Assembly: GCA_002269645.1 (NCBI GenBank)
Contig: NIVC01000804.1
Location: 1 to 36,909, forward strand
DNA length: 36,909 bases
Direction of reading: 5' to 3'
Origin: Macrostomum lignano
Lineage: Eukaryota
The notes under the pieces were generated by a model. It did not search any database. It was not told the origin of the DNA and was given only the letters and a program-made list of their open reading frames with translations. The translations under genes were made by a program, and so were the position numbers. Numbering within the stretch: position 1 is the stretch's first letter; each line of letters begins with the position of its first letter. Below are positions 6,101 to 21,100 of the stretch, piece after piece.

Positions 6101-9100
6101 GGAGTGGCCTGCGGCGCCAAAATGAGTGCCTGCCGCGCTAAAAGGAGTGGCCTGCGGCGCCAAAATGACTGCCCGCCGCGCTAAAAGGAGTGGCCTGCGG
6201 CGCCAAAATGAGTGCCTGCCGCGCTAAAAGGAGTGGCCTGCGGCGCCAAAATGAGTGCCTGCCGCGCTAAAAGGAGTGCCTTTGGCGCCAAAATGAGTGC
6301 CTGCCGCGCTAAAAGGAGTGGCCTGCGGCGCCAAAATGAGTGCTGAAAACATGATTCTCAAAATAATGGAAATGTAGGAATTTAGTAATGTACTGTACAT
6401 GTACATGTTGAATCCTTGGCTTTGTCCCCCCCCCACCATAAAATCCATGGCGACGCCCCTGATAAAGTTAGCCGTGTTCCTGAATTTTGTGTGAAGGCCA
6501 ACAAAGCGTTGCTCCATTCCAACGCAGCAAAAAGATGGCAGGATGGCTCTGTATTCCAGCAGTATGCCGTTAGACAGCAGCCACTTACAGCCAGTTGGTG
6601 TTGAAGAATTTGGCAGTGCCGTAGAACTCGGCCATGCCGCTGTAGGCGGCAATCACGTGACCTCCGGCCAGCCCGATGGCGATTCGATCCCGAGGGGTGC
6701 TGAATCGACTGGCTGTGCCGCCGGACTCGGAGATCAAATCGCCCTGGGTTGCAATTCATTTTGGTCAAATGTTTGTTTAGGATCTTTTTATTAGAGGCAG
6801 GGGGCTGTCTGCACTGCACCCTGGCGCACTTTAAGCGACATTGTCACACAACCGGCGAGAGGCATTACTGCCCATTCCGCCGACTCCCCTGAGCAGGCAC
6901 ACACTCGAACAGGAGTGTACAGCGGCCCTCACTGTGCCTTAAAGGTTGGCTCACAAGGCCGTTAATTGCACGAGCAGAGCCAAGCCGAGATTCCAATTTA
7001 GGCCCCAAATTAATGTGACTGCACTTGGAATCGAGCCTGGGCCGCTGGCACATCAGAGCGCCGCGCCAGACCACTGGGCTACGGCCCCTTGTTAAGGATC
7101 GTGCAGCGACCGACTTATATAAAACTTTTTTGCGGTCATAAACTGTACTAGGCTTATCAGTAGCAATATTTGCGTTTTTCGCTATTTTACGCTTCTTACG
7201 GTGTAATAGTCGAACCAGTTCGTACCAGCCGGGAGATACCCTGTGGTGGTGACTGTGTGCTGCAATTGATTTTATAATAATCTGATATCAGTTCAACAGA
7301 TTACCAATCCAATCGATCTTATTGAATCGAATACATATGCTGAGCACATGCAGACTCACCGGCTGAAGATTTGGGATGAGCAGCAGGCCGGGACCCCACA
7401 TAAACTGAGTGTCGATGTCCAGCGTTACGGGGTCGTTCGGGTAGCTTAAATGTTTGATTTTCGAAGGGGGAGGGAATCAGTAGCCAAATCTTCCCAGATG
7501 GATGAGGAAATCACTAGCCAAATCTCCCCAGATGGGGGAATCAGTGGCCAAATCTCCCCAGATGGGGGAATCAGTAGCCAAATCTCCCCAGATGGGCAAA
7601 TCAGTAGCCAAATCTCCCCAGATGGGCAAATCAGTAGCCAAATCTCCCCAGATGGGGAATCAGTAGCCAAATCTCCCCAGATGGGGAATCAGTAGCCAAA
7701 TCTCCCCAGATGAGGGAATCAGTAGCCAAATCTCCCCAGATGGGGAAATCAGTAGCCAAATCTCCCCAGATGGGGAATCAGTAGCCAAATCTCCCCAGAT
7801 GGGGAAATCAGTAGCCAAATCCCCCCGTCAAGTTGGACCAGGTTCCCCAGATTTGGCAACGGATGTCCCAAAGCTTCCCAAAGACTCACTCCTGGAACAG
7901 AGCTCGCACAGGTGGCGGTCCCTCAGTCTGTGCCGCTCGCATCTGGGTGTACAGATAGGGCAGCAGGCGGTACCTGTCCACCAGACTCTCCCTAATCGCG
8001 GCTGTGGTCCCAGGATCGAACGCGGCGGGATCCTGCGGCGCACCGTTCAGACCATTGTGACTGCGGCTGAACGGGTACCAGGAGCCCGCCTGCGACCACC
8101 GGAGGCAAAGGTCGCGGTCCACCGAGTCGCCGAAATAGCCGCAGATGTCGGCGCCCACCTGGAATAGATGAGTAGCTGGGTGTCCTGGTTTCGATTCCGA
8201 ATAGACCAATGAACAATGCAGAGCACTTACAAATGGAATGCCGAAAAATCCGTGCTCCACCATCCCGATGATGGAGTCACGCAGGTGCGTCCAGGATTTG
8301 CCGTTGTCACCGAGCCAGGTGCCGCCAAATTGTCCGTCTCCAGGGAATGTGGCTCGCGTGATCACCAGGCCTCGCTTGCCAGTGATTTGTTTCACTGCTC
8401 TAGTAGTAGTAGTAGTAGTAGTAGTAGTAGTAGTAGTAGTAGTAGTAGTAGTAGTAGTAGTAGTAGTAGTAGTAGTAGTAGTAGTAGTAGTAGTAGTAGT
8501 AGTAGTAGTAGTAGTAGTAGTAGTAGTAGTAGTAGTAGTAGTAGTAGTAGTAGTAGTAGTAGTAGTAGTAGTAGTAGTAGTAGTAGTAGTAGTAGTAGTA
8601 GTAGTAGTAGTAGTAGTAGTAGTAGTTAGTAGTAGTAGTAGTAGTGTAGTAGTAGTAGTAGTAGTAGTAGTAGTAGTAGTAGTAGTAGTAGTAGTAGTAG
8701 TAGTAGTAGTAGTAGTAGTAGTAGTAGTAGTAGTAGTAGTAGTAGTAGTAGTAGCAGTCTCACCTATCAGTAGCGATGCTCTGCATCTTGCCGTAGAGGC
8801 TGTGCACATCGTAGTGCCTGTATTTGCCGTCATTGTGCAGTGCGTTCATGCAGATTGTCTTGTCGGATATCCAGGGGCCCCACATCTCTGGAATTGGAAG
8901 ATGACGCGGAAATTAGCTTGATACATGGTGTACTAATTGGGCACCGAACACACACTTGTTTTATAAGGCGGCGTTTCCAGTTTATCGCTCAGGTTGCACT
9001 TCAGACTCCAGTAGGGCCTGGCGTGCTCCGGCCAGTTCCACGGTCGCTCCTCGTTGGTGCCAAAGTTGGCGGGCTCGTTCATGTCCAGCCAGAGGCCGTC

Positions 9101-18100: not shown

Positions 18101-21100
18101 CTGTACATCCTGTGTGAGCGTGTGTATGAGTCCACGTAGGTGAACCCTTCCCTATATGAGATCCCAGAAATCCTAATTTGAAAATCCAGCTCTAATATCC
18201 GATACAGCGGCAAATCACACGAATCCCCGGCGAAAATCTCAATGGGAAATCCCAAAATGGGAAATCCCACAGGGAAATCCCAAAATGGGAAATCCCACAG
18301 GGAAATCTAAAAGGGAAATCCCACAGGGAAATCCAAAAGGGAAATTCCAAAAAGCGAAATCCCACAGGGAAATTCAAAAAGGAAATTCCAAAAGGGAAAT
18401 CTCACAGCAAAATCATAAAGGGAAATCCAAGAGGGAAATCCAAAAGGAAAATCCCACAGGGAAATCCAAAAAAGAAATTCCAAAAAGGGTAATCCCACAG
18501 GGAAATCCAAAAGGCAAATCTCATAACAAAATCTTAAGGGGAAATCCAAGAGGAAGATACGAAAGGGAAATCCCACATAAAAACTATACGGCCTCATTAC
18601 CGGTTAGTTTCCAACGTGGAATTCCACAGGGAAACCCCACCGAATTTTCCCAACTAAAAACCGCTAGCTACAAAAAAGATCTGCAACTTTCGCAGTTTAA
18701 CTCACTCGGTCTGTATAGCGGCATCTCCAGCAGGGACCTGTTGTTGCACTTCAGACTCCAGTAGGGCCGGGCGTGCTCCGGCCAGTTCCACGGTTTCTCC
18801 TCGTTGGTGCCAAAGTTGGCGGGCTCGTTCATGTCCTAGAAGTAATAAGACTCAAGTGAGCAGACTACCAGCCGTATAAAATCAAGCAAAGCACTAAAGT
18901 ACAACGCAAGCGAGAATCGCTAACCAGCCAAATTCCATCGAACGGCACCCCGGTGCTGTGATGCTCTGTGAGCAGCTGGCTCCAGTATTCCACAGCCGAA
19001 TTCTTGAAGAAATCAATAAAAACCACTTTTCCGCTGGGCCACACCTGCGCGAGATGAGGGATGCGTTGCGGTTGATGGGGCTAATTTTCTTGAAGTGCGA
19101 ATGAGGTCCGGAGCTCGAGTCGCACTATAGTTGTTGCTCAAGTGCAATGAGGTCCGGAGCTCGAGTCGCACTATAGTTGCTGCTCAAGTGCAATGAGGTC
19201 CCGAGCTCGAGTCGCACTATAGTTGTTGCTCAAGTGCAATGAGGTCCCGAGCTCGAGTCGCACTATAGTTGTTGCTCAAGTGCAATGAGGTCCCGAGCTC
19301 GAGTCGCACTAAAGTTGTTGCTCAAGTGCAATGAGGTCCGGAGCTCGAGTCGCACTATAGTTGTTGCTCAAGTGCAATGAGGTCTCGAGCTCGAGTCGCA
19401 CTATAGTTGTTGCTCAAGTGCAATGAGGTCCCGAGCTCGAGTCGCACTAAAGTTGTTGCTCAAGTGCAATGAGGTCCCGAGCTCGAGTCGCACTATAGTT
19501 TTTGCTTAAGTGCGATAAGGTCCGGAGCTCGAGTCGCACTATAGTTGTTGCTCAAGTGCAATGAGGTCCCGAGCTCGAGTCGCACTATAGTTGTTGCTTT
19601 AGTGCAATGAGGTCCCGAGCTCGAGTCGCACTATAGTTGTTGCTCAAGTGCAATGAGGTCCCGAGCTCGAGTCGCACTATAGTTGTTGCCAAGTGCAATG
19701 AGGTCCCGAGCTCGAGTCGCACTATAGTTGTTGCTCAAGTGCAATGAGGTCCCGAGCTCGAGTCGCACTAAAGTTGTTGCTCAAGTGCGATAAGGTCCCG
19801 AGCTCGAGTCGCACTATAGTTTTTGCTTAAGTGCGATGAGGTCCCGAGCTCGAGTCATAACATAGTATAGTTTCTAAAGTGCAGTGAGGTCCTGAGCTCG
19901 AGTCGCACTATGATTTATTTGAAAAGCAGAGCGGCAAGCGGCCTCACATATCCTAGTAGCACCGTGTCGTTGAGAAAATCAAAATCTCCAGGAGGCATTT
20001 CGTCAGCCGAGCGCCATCGCACGAAGGCGTCCATTTGGCGGCCGAGCTCGAACGGTCGGTAGCTGCTCGAATTGATGACGACAACGGGATTCTGGAACAG
20101 TTTGATAACCCGATGTTGTATTGTATTTTTTACAGGAAATTATATCGTACTAAATTTCTATCTTCAGTTACATAGTCTACAGGGGATCCGTAGCCCAGTC
20201 GTCTAGCGCGGCGCTCTGATGTGCCAGCGGCCCAGGCTCGATTCCAAGTGCTGTCACGTTAATTCGGGGTAAATTAAAATCCAGGCCTACCTCTGCTCAT
20301 GCAGTTAAAGCCCTCGAGGGCCAAAACAAAGGCACAGAGAGTGTACATGCCTGACGTTAGAAATGCAGGGTCGCTGTACACCCTGTGGGATACGTGTATG
20401 ATAATGCGTACCATAACCCTTGTGCAAATTTGATTATTAGTTTACCAATATGGCAATATTCCTCATGCCAAATCGATTCCGCTGATCGACTAAAAAGTCG
20501 TACAACCCGGCATAATTCACGGGATCAACGGTGAACACCCGCCTCTGGTCCAGGTGATCAATGTCCAGGTGCAGGACGTCGATGGGCAGGCCGATGGCGC
20601 GGTTCCTGGCCAGTGTGTCGTTGATCTGAGCGAGACTTCGATAGCCGTAGCGGCTCAGGTGGAAGCCGAGGCTCCAGTAGGGGGGCAGGCTGGGCCGGCC
20701 CACCAGCTGGTGGTACTGAGCCGTCACCGACTCCGGGTCCGGGCCCAGGAAGAGGAACTGATCGAAGACGCCACCAGTAGTTCGGTATACCAGTTTGGGG
20801 CCGGGGGTGGTGACGAACTCTGCGCGAAGGTGATTGTAAAATTGAGATGAATTTTAATGTGGACTAGCCAAAGAACCCCCTTTTGGAAGGCTTTTCCATG
20901 ATGATTTTTAGTATACGTGGACTAGACAAATAACCCCCTTTTGGAAGGGTTTTGTGAGATGATTTTAGTGTACGTGGACTAGCCAATGAACCCCTTTTTG
21001 GAAGGGTTTTCTAAGATTAATTTTTTGTATACGTGGACTAGCCAATGAACCCCCTTTTTGGAAGGGTTTTCAAAGATGATTTTTAGTATTACGTGGACTA

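Follow-up and report, generated by a model that had tools for sequence, protein, structure and literature searches.

Near-identity of the catalytic nucleophile exon in the two GH31 modules of a Macrostomum lignano SI/MGAM-like gene is best explained by short-tract intragenic gene conversion

Introduction

How can two glycoside hydrolase modules of one polypeptide, diverged to saturation along almost their whole length, be nearly identical in nucleotide sequence around the catalytic nucleophile? The question is raised by Macrostomum lignano contig NIVC01000804.1 (GCA_002269645.1), which carries a two-module GH31 gene of the SI/MGAM type and which was analysed here as a whole (36,909 nt; hereafter, the window). 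The first-pass annotation of the window, made from its letters, had proposed recent ectopic conversion between the modules.

Short-tract ectopic conversion between old tandem paralogues is familiar from exons of the globin, opsin, RHD/RHCE and CYP21 genes, and from the concerted evolution of internal repeats. In the literature searched, nothing relevant was found on inter-module conversion in SI/MGAM or GH31 genes.

Results

The GH31 gene has about 30 exons on the minus strand (Table 1), and its deposited protein is PAA76663.1 (Mlig028669g3). In this hand-built gene model, exons 13-14 and everything past exon 28 are approximate, and the two exons that hold the tract match the deposited proteins. 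Pfam PF01055 (Glyco_hydro_31) matches two stretches of the homeolog protein P0241 (E=2e-176), and both modules are encoded in the window. There is also a match to the trefoil domain PF00088 (E=1e-11), and a hydrophobic stretch of 24 residues right after the start points to an N-terminal membrane anchor. WLDMNEP and GTWLGDN, the latter with the acid/base motif W-L-GDN, occur in module 1 and in module 2 and align with WIDMNE and HWLGDN of the human MGAM structures 9kz6, 3ton and 2qly. The Asp of DMNE is taken to be the nucleophile, in keeping with established GH31 knowledge. Vertebrate SI/MGAM shares this layout, from the anchor through the trefoil to the pair of GH31 TIM-barrel modules and their WxDMNE and WLGDN motifs, but unlike in human MGAM the flatworm loop that follows DMNEP is of a lophotrochozoan type (GTNEE[KR]PWNWPE…PYWSLKC) and is gapped in the alignment. 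Based on these domains and motifs, the product is predicted to be a gut-type alpha-glucosidase. The introns of the gene are rich in minisatellites, and each module lacks different ancestral introns, so intron loss has been at work here.

Table 1. Features of the GH31 gene in the window, in order of transcription
Feature	Position	Strand	Remarks
Two-module GH31 (SI/MGAM-like) gene	3140..24486	minus	hand-built model; domain searches
ATG micro-exon	24486-24481	minus	
Membrane anchor and trefoil		minus	after the ATG micro-exon; hydrophobic stretch; Pfam
Phase-0 intron, 89 nt (GTTAGC…TTCTAG)	18836..18924	minus	directly upstream of module-1 tract; 5' limit of identity; missing from module 2
Module-1 tract	18743..18835	minus	first 93 nt (31 codons) of exon 8 (18835-18706); includes the W-L-DMNE nucleophile Asp; junctions agree with P0241
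Unconverted 3' rest of module-1 exon 8 (13 residues)	18706..18742	minus	19/37 nt match module 2
In-frame TAA in module-1 exon 11 (DVDI*FMWG)	16786..16788	minus	homeolog L001 reads ATGGAA (ME)
Module 1	ends ~14789	minus	
Module 2	begins 14424	minus	
Module-2 exon 22, upstream part (AWPQG…FDGLWL)	9086..9208	minus	homologous to module-1 exon 7 (19044-18925)
Module-2 tract	8993..9085	minus	inside exon 22 (9208-8956); identical in 4/4 M. lignano contigs carrying it
Unconverted 3' rest of module-2 exon 22 (13 residues)	8956..8992	minus	counterpart of 18706-18742
TAA stop of gene	3142-3140	minus	

Outside the tract, the two modules have 39% amino-acid identity and 51% base identity, with a saturated dS of about 1.8, and they appear to be ancient tandem duplicates. 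In a neighbour-joining tree of modules the two flatworm modules pair on long branches; by identity, in contrast, each is nearer to mollusc and brachiopod modules than to its partner.

Against this background, the two tracts, 9.75 kb apart, agree at 90 of 93 coding bases, in 29 of 31 codons and at all 31 third positions. Two of the three differences fall in one codon, A/C at 18796/9046 and A/G at 18795/9045 (AAA Lys vs CGA Arg); the third is C/A at 18769/9019 (CGG vs AGG, both Arg). The encoded peptides hence consist of 13 shared residues, the Lys/Arg position and 17 further shared residues. The annotation's count of three differences in 94 bases (8993-9086 vs 18743-18836) and 29 of 31 identical codons is reproduced, and only its extent needs trimming: base 94 (18836/9086) is the G of the module-1 intron's AG acceptor vs the final base of a CTG Leu codon in module 2, and it lies outside the tract and agrees by chance. 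Tandem repeats aside, a self-BLAST of the window gives the tract as the sole inter-module match of high identity, the next best being at 70-71%.

Both edges of the tract are sharp. In spliced coordinates, only the last 6 nt upstream of it (TGGCTG) are identical, and synonymous sites further upstream differ. Downstream, a mere 19 of 37 nt match between the remainders of the two exons, which places the 3' breakpoint inside the exon.

The excess of identity shows at synonymous sites. NG86 dS between the modules, a comparison that the annotation had suggested, is about 0.10 in the tract vs 1.79 in the rest of the module alignment. Degenerate codons for the same residue are identical in 25 of 26 cases in the tract vs 127 of 269 (0.47) outside it (binomial P=1e-7), and four-fold sites agree at 9/9 vs 36% of 143. 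When codon columns were permuted 20,000 times, the maximal-segment score of 87 never recurred under either of two nulls (P<5e-5), even with a fixed amino-acid pattern.

These figures bear on a reading in which nothing was copied, and in which extreme purifying selection on the catalytic loop and strong codon bias keep the modules nucleotide-identical. The loop peptide is indeed highly conserved across phyla, and GC3 is 0.90 in the tract vs 0.72 in the gene. With the gene's codon usage as the null, however, about 12.2 matches would be expected among the 26 codons, and the observed pattern has a probability of ~3e-9; even if a third-position match rate of 0.65 is assumed, 31/31 has P ~1.6e-6. 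Other equally conserved blocks of the gene reach just 0.37-0.63 identical codons, and the LVGRPSLPP exon 16 of 43, in line with the annotation's remark that conserved blocks elsewhere differ at third positions. The raised GC3 fits GC-biased conversion and, equally, stronger codon bias at conserved residues. The GTWLGDN and VGADICG blocks (70-71% by blastn, with runs of 6 identical codons) were considered as further conversion patches and rejected, as they are indistinguishable from background at conserved residues.

Modules of other lophotrochozoans provide a direct control for constraint. Over the same 31 codons, modules within a species share 59 of 93 bases in Lingula, 53 in Lineus, 65-73 in Mytilus and 68-69 between Patella module 1 or 2 and module 3, with 13-21 of 31 third positions identical in these comparisons. 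Residues are conserved between these modules at 20-25 of 31 positions, yet identical codons number just 7-8 of 18-22 in Lingula, Lineus and Patella module 3; Mytilus is higher, at ~0.6-0.7 over the entire exon. Amino-acid constraint by itself thus yields 53-73 identical bases of 93 in these comparisons, and only the synonymous identity of the flatworm tract is abnormal. Constraint with codon bias, which the annotation had named as a way in which its proposal might fail, is not borne out; the controls have largely refuted it already, and we consider it very unlikely.

The same data speak to the possibility that synonymous sites in both modules are constrained by a functional element of the nucleotide sequence (structured RNA, small-RNA target or splicing element), as the unusual similarity of this exon between modules in Patella and Gigantopelta (see below) might suggest. 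Between species, however, the tract is 46-76/93 identical, with synonymous choices that differ from species to species, which indicates that no element at the nucleotide level is common to them. The pattern is also missing in Lingula, Lineus, Mytilus and Patella module 3. No Rfam match was found within the window, and the predicted fold of the tract is no better than that of shuffled sequence (z = -0.57). Such an element is highly improbable.

The tract is reproduced at a homeologous locus, L001 (NIVC01000025.1), which has the same exon/intron layout and differs from the window by a dS of 0.022. Its modules match at 88 of 93 bases, with the same three differences and two further private ones. 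The module-2 tract is also found unaltered on two other M. lignano contigs, L002 and L003, and the K/R difference recurs in P0121, a UniProt model that comes from a different annotation. These observations are hard to reconcile with an assembly, collapse or polishing artefact that placed reads of one module onto the other. The Mlig_3_7 assembly is partly chimeric between subgenomes (PMC10733133), which would favour an artefact, as would the repeat-rich nature of the region; but the flanks are unique and unrelated on either side, three real differences are kept, and the pattern recurs in both modules of L001. An assembly collapse or chimera, raised in the annotation as a possible undoing of its claim, is excluded by the homeolog and is scarcely credible.

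Since the tract and its three differences are common to homeologs at a dS of 0.022, the conversion predates the M. lignano subgenome split. The event can be called recent, as it was in the annotation, relative to the age of the modules, but not relative to that split. For the two window-vs-L001 differences, ~0.65 ordinary mutations would be expected on the L001 lineage, and they fit two mutations on that lineage as well as a second micro-conversion. Neither these two differences nor loop residues or flank GC3 separate donor from recipient.

The deposited CDS of this contig begins past the in-frame TAA of module 1, and the two tracts do not share one intact ORF here, whereas in L001 both lie in one intact ORF. 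A reading of this TAA as Gln (ciliate-type code) was dropped, because L001 has ATGGAA at that place and the gene is metazoan.

The intron that ends just before the nucleophile had been described as specific to module 1. Our survey indicates otherwise: a phase-0 intron occurs at the exact pre-DMNEP position in 11 of 15 modules (all three of Patella, both of Gigantopelta, Lingula and Lineus, module 1 of Mytilus and module 1 of M. lignano). The intron is ancestral across Lophotrochozoa, judging from this distribution, and was lost from M. lignano module 2. Its precise, scarless absence right where the tract has its 5' edge resembles intron loss mediated by reverse transcription and recommends a cDNA route, in which a reverse-transcribed, spliced module-1 transcript recombined with module 2 and removed the intron and copied the tract in one step; the activity of intron loss in the gene adds to its appeal. 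Such a route, however, would be expected to leave identity across the former exon-exon junction, and upstream of that junction just 6 nt match, namely TGG for Trp and CTG, the commonest Leu codon. With no identity spanning the junction, the intron may have been lost separately from the conversion. That the edge of the tract falls at the intron is to be expected in any case, as homology between the modules ends at the intron of module 1, and in Patella the same exon was converted with introns kept in both modules. We therefore regard the cDNA route as unlikely.

The same exon stands out in two sea snails. Between Patella modules 1 and 2, the nucleophile exon is 95% identical vs 41-77% for each other exon, and its flanking introns are unrelated; between Gigantopelta modules 1 and 2, 81 of 93 bases and 24 of 31 third positions are identical (P=2e-4). 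In a tree built on the flanks the gastropod sequences group by module; in the tract they group by species. The exon was homogenised independently between modules 1 and 2 of each snail.

Discussion

By far the best explanation of the flatworm tract is short-tract, non-allelic (intragenic) gene conversion from one GH31 module to the other, with a probability that we put at roughly 0.85. The proposal of the first-pass annotation is upheld in this respect by the contrast in dS, by the controls in other lophotrochozoans and by the pattern at L001. In this reading, one module would have received from its partner, non-reciprocally, a 93-bp segment starting from the first base of the nucleophile exon. 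The most likely setting is the mending of a DNA break through synthesis-dependent strand annealing, templated by the partner module, which could lie on the same or on the sister chromatid. The upstream end of the segment would mark the end of homology, where the module-1 intron faces exon sequence in module 2 because the ancestral intron was lost there, and its downstream end would lie inside the exon, where the sequences are ~50% alike. Copying would have preceded subgenome divergence, with the three differences accumulating since then.

Homologous repair at the ~65-75% identity that probably preceded the event is expected to be inefficient, which makes a single conversion mechanistically awkward. 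An alternative history is repeated conversion within a shrinking island since the time when the modules were more alike. For conversion in either form, amino-acid constraint probably kept the two copies of the exon alike enough for them to recombine, and this would explain the independent homogenisation of the same exon in two gastropods.

The consequences for the protein were probably almost nil, since selection holds the loop near-constant in most lophotrochozoan GH31 modules, and the conversion may have been close to neutral. It had been proposed that conversion counteracts the divergence of specificity between modules. This finds no support, as DMNEP and most loop residues are conserved in almost every lophotrochozoan module, whether it was converted or not, and the protein is nearly unchanged; functional re-homogenisation of substrate specificity is not implied by the tract.

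The flatworm tract is a clear yet ordinary case of the short-tract ectopic gene conversion already known from other genes. Like those cases, it is a sharp, non-reciprocal patch of ~100 bp where synonymous divergence falls close to zero between paralogues that are saturated elsewhere, and it stays within exon sequence for want of homology between the introns. Unlike typical conversion partners, the M. lignano modules belong to one polypeptide and, at ~40% protein identity, are far more diverged; moreover, the loop of the catalytic nucleophile falls within the patch, and its exon has been hit independently in another phylum. Conversion can therefore still act between modules ~40% identical if one exon is kept near-constant by selection. 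Such patches would mislead assignments of module orthology, dN/dS scans and selection tests of SI/MGAM-type genes.

The gastropod data suggest that conversion hits the nucleophile exon repeatedly in GH31 genes with several modules. A bolder generalisation, which is tentative and on present evidence rather doubtful, is that this exon is a recurrent "conversion island" of tandem GH31 modules, seen in the flatworm and two gastropods while other exons diverge freely. If true, it would reveal a new, testable pattern in how domains co-evolve, based either on selection favouring matched loops in neighbouring modules or on a lasting recombinational coupling, over hundreds of millions of years, of whichever exon is under the strongest constraint in ancient tandem domains.

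A collection of 5.8 billion proteins yielded no Macrostomum congeners, M. lignano being alone above 53% identity. In Penaeus vannamei, the two modules have identical 41-residue loops.

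Near-identity between the two catalytic loops

The two GH31 modules of this SI/MGAM-like gene share a stretch of 31 codons encoding [13 protein letters not shown][K/R][17 protein letters not shown], and the two copies differ by one nonsynonymous change, AAA/CGA (Lys/Arg, 18796-18795 vs 9046-9045), and one synonymous change, CGG/AGG (Arg, 18769 vs 9019). Third positions are therefore identical at all 31 codons. The first-pass annotation had described a 94-nt match between window positions 8993-9086 and 18743-18836. Its count of three mismatches stands, but the 94th base is a chance match outside the coding tract, pairing the G of the module-1 intron acceptor with the last base of a module-2 Leu codon. 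When the window was compared with itself by BLAST, most matches were minisatellites; the tract pair was the sole high-identity non-tandem match between the gene halves, and the next best inter-module matches reached 70-71%.

The near-identity of the tract is real and statistically secure. In an inter-module alignment of 754 codons, amino-acid identity is 30/31 inside the tract and 39% outside, and nucleotide identity is 90/93 and 51%, respectively. All nine four-fold sites in the tract are identical, against 36% of 143 elsewhere. Where both modules carry the same degenerate residue, 25 of 26 codons agree in the tract compared with 127/269 (0.47) outside (binomial P 1e-7), the expectation for the tract from the gene's own codon usage being 12.2. 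By the NG86 method, dS is about 0.10 in the tract and 1.79, which is saturated, outside it (dN 0.02 and 0.65); for comparison, dS between the window and the homeologous M. lignano locus on NIVC01000025.1 (L001) is 0.022. An exon-by-exon scan returned the exon pair with the tract as its sole outlier. None of 20,000 permutations attained the maximal-segment statistic of 87, whether codon columns were permuted without restriction or the amino-acid pattern was held constant and codon pairs were exchanged only inside their residue class.

Coordinates of the features (window positions unless another sequence is named)
Feature	Position	Strand	Remark
Module-1 tract	18835-18743	minus	31 codons, gene orientation
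Module-2 tract	9085-8993	minus	31 codons, gene orientation
Module 1	exons 1-14 of gene model	minus	
Module 2	from 14424	minus	
Neighbouring genes	26345-28383; 979-1323	minus; plus	L001: 4010-7745; 31282-33900
Exon-5 partial duplicate	21289-21379 vs 20711-20831	minus	about 90-92% identical, 30-nt internal deletion
Example array	8401-8758		(TAG)119
Example array	9248-10359		25-mer x45
Example array	10901-11874		36-mer x27
Example array	17098-17364		(GACA)67
Example array	19093-19911		46-mer x18
Example arrays	23612-24392; 24790-26006		
Short dispersed repeat	6928-7089 vs 20341-20181	inverted	82%
Short dispersed repeat	18025-18117 vs 20297-20390		75%
Patella nucleophile exon pair (L004)	OW026351.2, about 11850-11976 vs 30628-30754		

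Constraint and parallels in other species

The loop peptide is strikingly conserved among mollusc, brachiopod, annelid and nemertean modules, so the identity of 30/31 residues is unremarkable and only the synonymous identity needs explaining. As a control set, the same 31 codons were compared between modules within species in genomic DNA of multi-module orthologues from five species.

Within-species identity of the 31 codons (m1, m2 and m3, modules 1, 2 and 3)
Module pair	Nucleotides	Third positions
Lingula m1-m2	59/93	14/31
Lineus m1-m2	53/93	13/31
Mytilus, three module pairs	65-73/93	18-21/31
Patella m1 or m2 vs m3	68-69/93	13/31
Patella m1-m2	90/93	29/31
Gigantopelta m1-m2	81/93	24/31
M. 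lignano m1-m2, window	90/93	31/31
M. lignano m1-m2, L001	88/93	30/31

Across species, tract identity is 46-76/93 and synonymous choices differ by lineage; this comparison revealed no DNA-level element kept across species, and the tract gave no Rfam match and no prediction of an unusual RNA fold. Judged from these alignments, amino-acid constraint is insufficient to account for the tract identity.

In Patella vulgata, the nucleophile exons of modules 1 and 2 are 95% identical (29/32 same-residue codons identical), identity in all other exons of the alignment ranges over 41-77%, and the introns on either side are not related. For Gigantopelta aegis (L006), the third-position match in the tract has P=2e-4. 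In a catalytic-domain tree built without the loop, module 1 of Patella groups with module 1 of Gigantopelta and module 2 with module 2, whereas in the tract the modules of one species are most closely related to one another. The grouping of tracts by species and flanks by module, proposed earlier as the mark of conversion, is thus seen in these gastropods, where the nucleophile exon has been homogenised independently between modules 1 and 2.

At the protein level, both modules of Penaeus vannamei (P0160) share an identical 41-residue loop, FDTDK occurs in the loops of both module 2 and module 3 of Mytilus trossulus (P0123), and lineage-specific residues are shared between loops of different modules in these two species and in Lymnaea stagnalis (P0136). 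Such sharing hints at further concerted evolution; the Mytilus nucleotides carry no strong homogenisation signal.

Tract boundaries and mechanism

The module-1 tract opens exon 8 from its first base, right after an 89-nt phase-0 intron, and in module 2 the exon runs on upstream with no intron at this point. A phase-0 intron at the exact position is found in Patella m1-m3, Gigantopelta, Lingula and Lineus m1 and m2, Mytilus m1 and M. lignano m1; among the modules surveyed, Mytilus m2, Mytilus m3 and M. lignano m2 alone lack the intron before DMNEP. Being present in most surveyed modules, it is ancestral and was lost from M. lignano module 2, the opposite of the module-1-specific intron originally proposed. 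In the spliced sequence 5' of the junction the match is limited to TGGCTG, and in the remainder of the exon 3' of the tract 19/37 nt match. The 5' edge falls where homology ends, and the 3' edge is internal to the exon. Ancestral introns lost in module 2 (slash marking the intron) are NIAIL/NPVV, GIWL/DMNEP and FQSSP/DQDP, and those lost in module 1 are QYTE/LVGRP, IATDR/AVKQ and GIPF/VGAD; since the modules lack different ancestral introns, intron loss has been active in the gene (3140-24486).

On sequence evidence, this pattern is the trace expected from short-tract non-allelic gene conversion. A break in or near the nucleophile exon of one module would be repaired from the other module, 9.75 kb away, and the heteroduplex could not extend into intron DNA that lacks homology. 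An event mediated by cDNA, which would have deleted the module-2 intron as well, is possible but less likely, because no identity crosses the former junction and because in Patella the same exon was converted with both introns kept. The identity before the event is estimated at only about 65-75%, which is a difficulty for any single-event conversion model; an alternative history is repeated conversion in an island shrinking to the most constrained exon. As a case of inter-module conversion, the tract adds one more instance of a known process and is mechanistically ordinary. In the searchable literature, of incomplete coverage, no account of conversion between modules of SI/MGAM or GH31 genes was found; the added value here lies in the control set and in the same exon being a repeated target in other lophotrochozoans.

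Gene structure, homeologs and age

The gene model, derived from six-frame translation and from tblastn with homologues, has about 30 exons on the minus strand and runs from an ATG micro-exon (24486-24481) to a stop codon at 3142-3140. From the N-terminus it encodes a membrane anchor, a trefoil, GH31 module 1, a second trefoil-like region and GH31 module 2 (Pfam: two Glyco_hydro_31 and Trefoil). Along its whole length the catalytic region can be aligned with structures of human maltase-glucoamylase, DMNE of the tract falling on WIDMNE. The closest database match is an M. lignano protein, in a cluster that holds PAA76663.1 (Mlig028669g3).

The M. lignano genome is neopolyploid, and SNP differences among its three subgenomes amount to about 1.4-2.4% (PMC10733133). 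Copies of the gene on three further contigs were compared with the window. L001 is a full-length homeolog with the exon/intron arrangement of the window, from which its exons diverge by about 1.4% (module 1) and 0.7% (module 2); only module 2 is present on L002 and L003, with exons essentially identical to the window. The upstream neighbour is an Abhydrolase_3/AADAC-like esterase gene and the downstream one a peptidase C1 (bleomycin-hydrolase-like) gene, and the same neighbours beside L001 confirm its synteny. The plus strand also carries a channel-like ORF at 34042-34914.

The tract occurs in both modules of L001, and its module-2 copy is identical in the window and all three contigs, which disposes of an assembly artefact, a concern raised in the first-pass annotation. 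In L001 the module-1 tract departs from module 2 by the three differences seen in the window and by two private ones (CCC for CCG; GAC, Asp, for GCC, Ala). This places the homogenisation before these homeologs split; by divergence it is roughly two to five times as old as the split, an estimate from only three differences and of wide uncertainty.

The window copy has an in-frame TAA in module-1 exon 11 (16788-16786, minus strand; DVDI-stop-FMWG, ATATAA) where L001 reads ATGGAA (DVDMEFMWG). The GenBank CDS of the contig (PAA76663.1) begins just past this TAA, and the UniProt model P0121 omits the exon. L001 has a single intact ORF of 1,974 residues, and dN/dS between the copies is about 0.24. 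The window copy is probably a decaying homeolog, or looks like a null allele. The first-pass annotation had credited conversion with homogenising the nucleophile and the adjacent loop against specificity divergence; modules without conversion, however, also show an invariant nucleophile motif and little variation over most of the loop, and conversion neither restored nor homogenised catalytic function in a meaningful sense.

Repeats and duplicated segments

A partial duplicate of exon 5 with an acceptor site lies 5' of a 59-bp minisatellite in intron 4; its presence in L001 (12695-12806) means that it predates the homeolog split. Copies of a short dispersed repeat, probably a transposable-element fragment, lie in introns of both modules, the inverted pair about 13 kb apart in the same pre-mRNA. 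Minisatellite arrays crowd nearly every intron and the intergenic DNA (49 TRF rows), and their lengths vary among the homeologous contigs.
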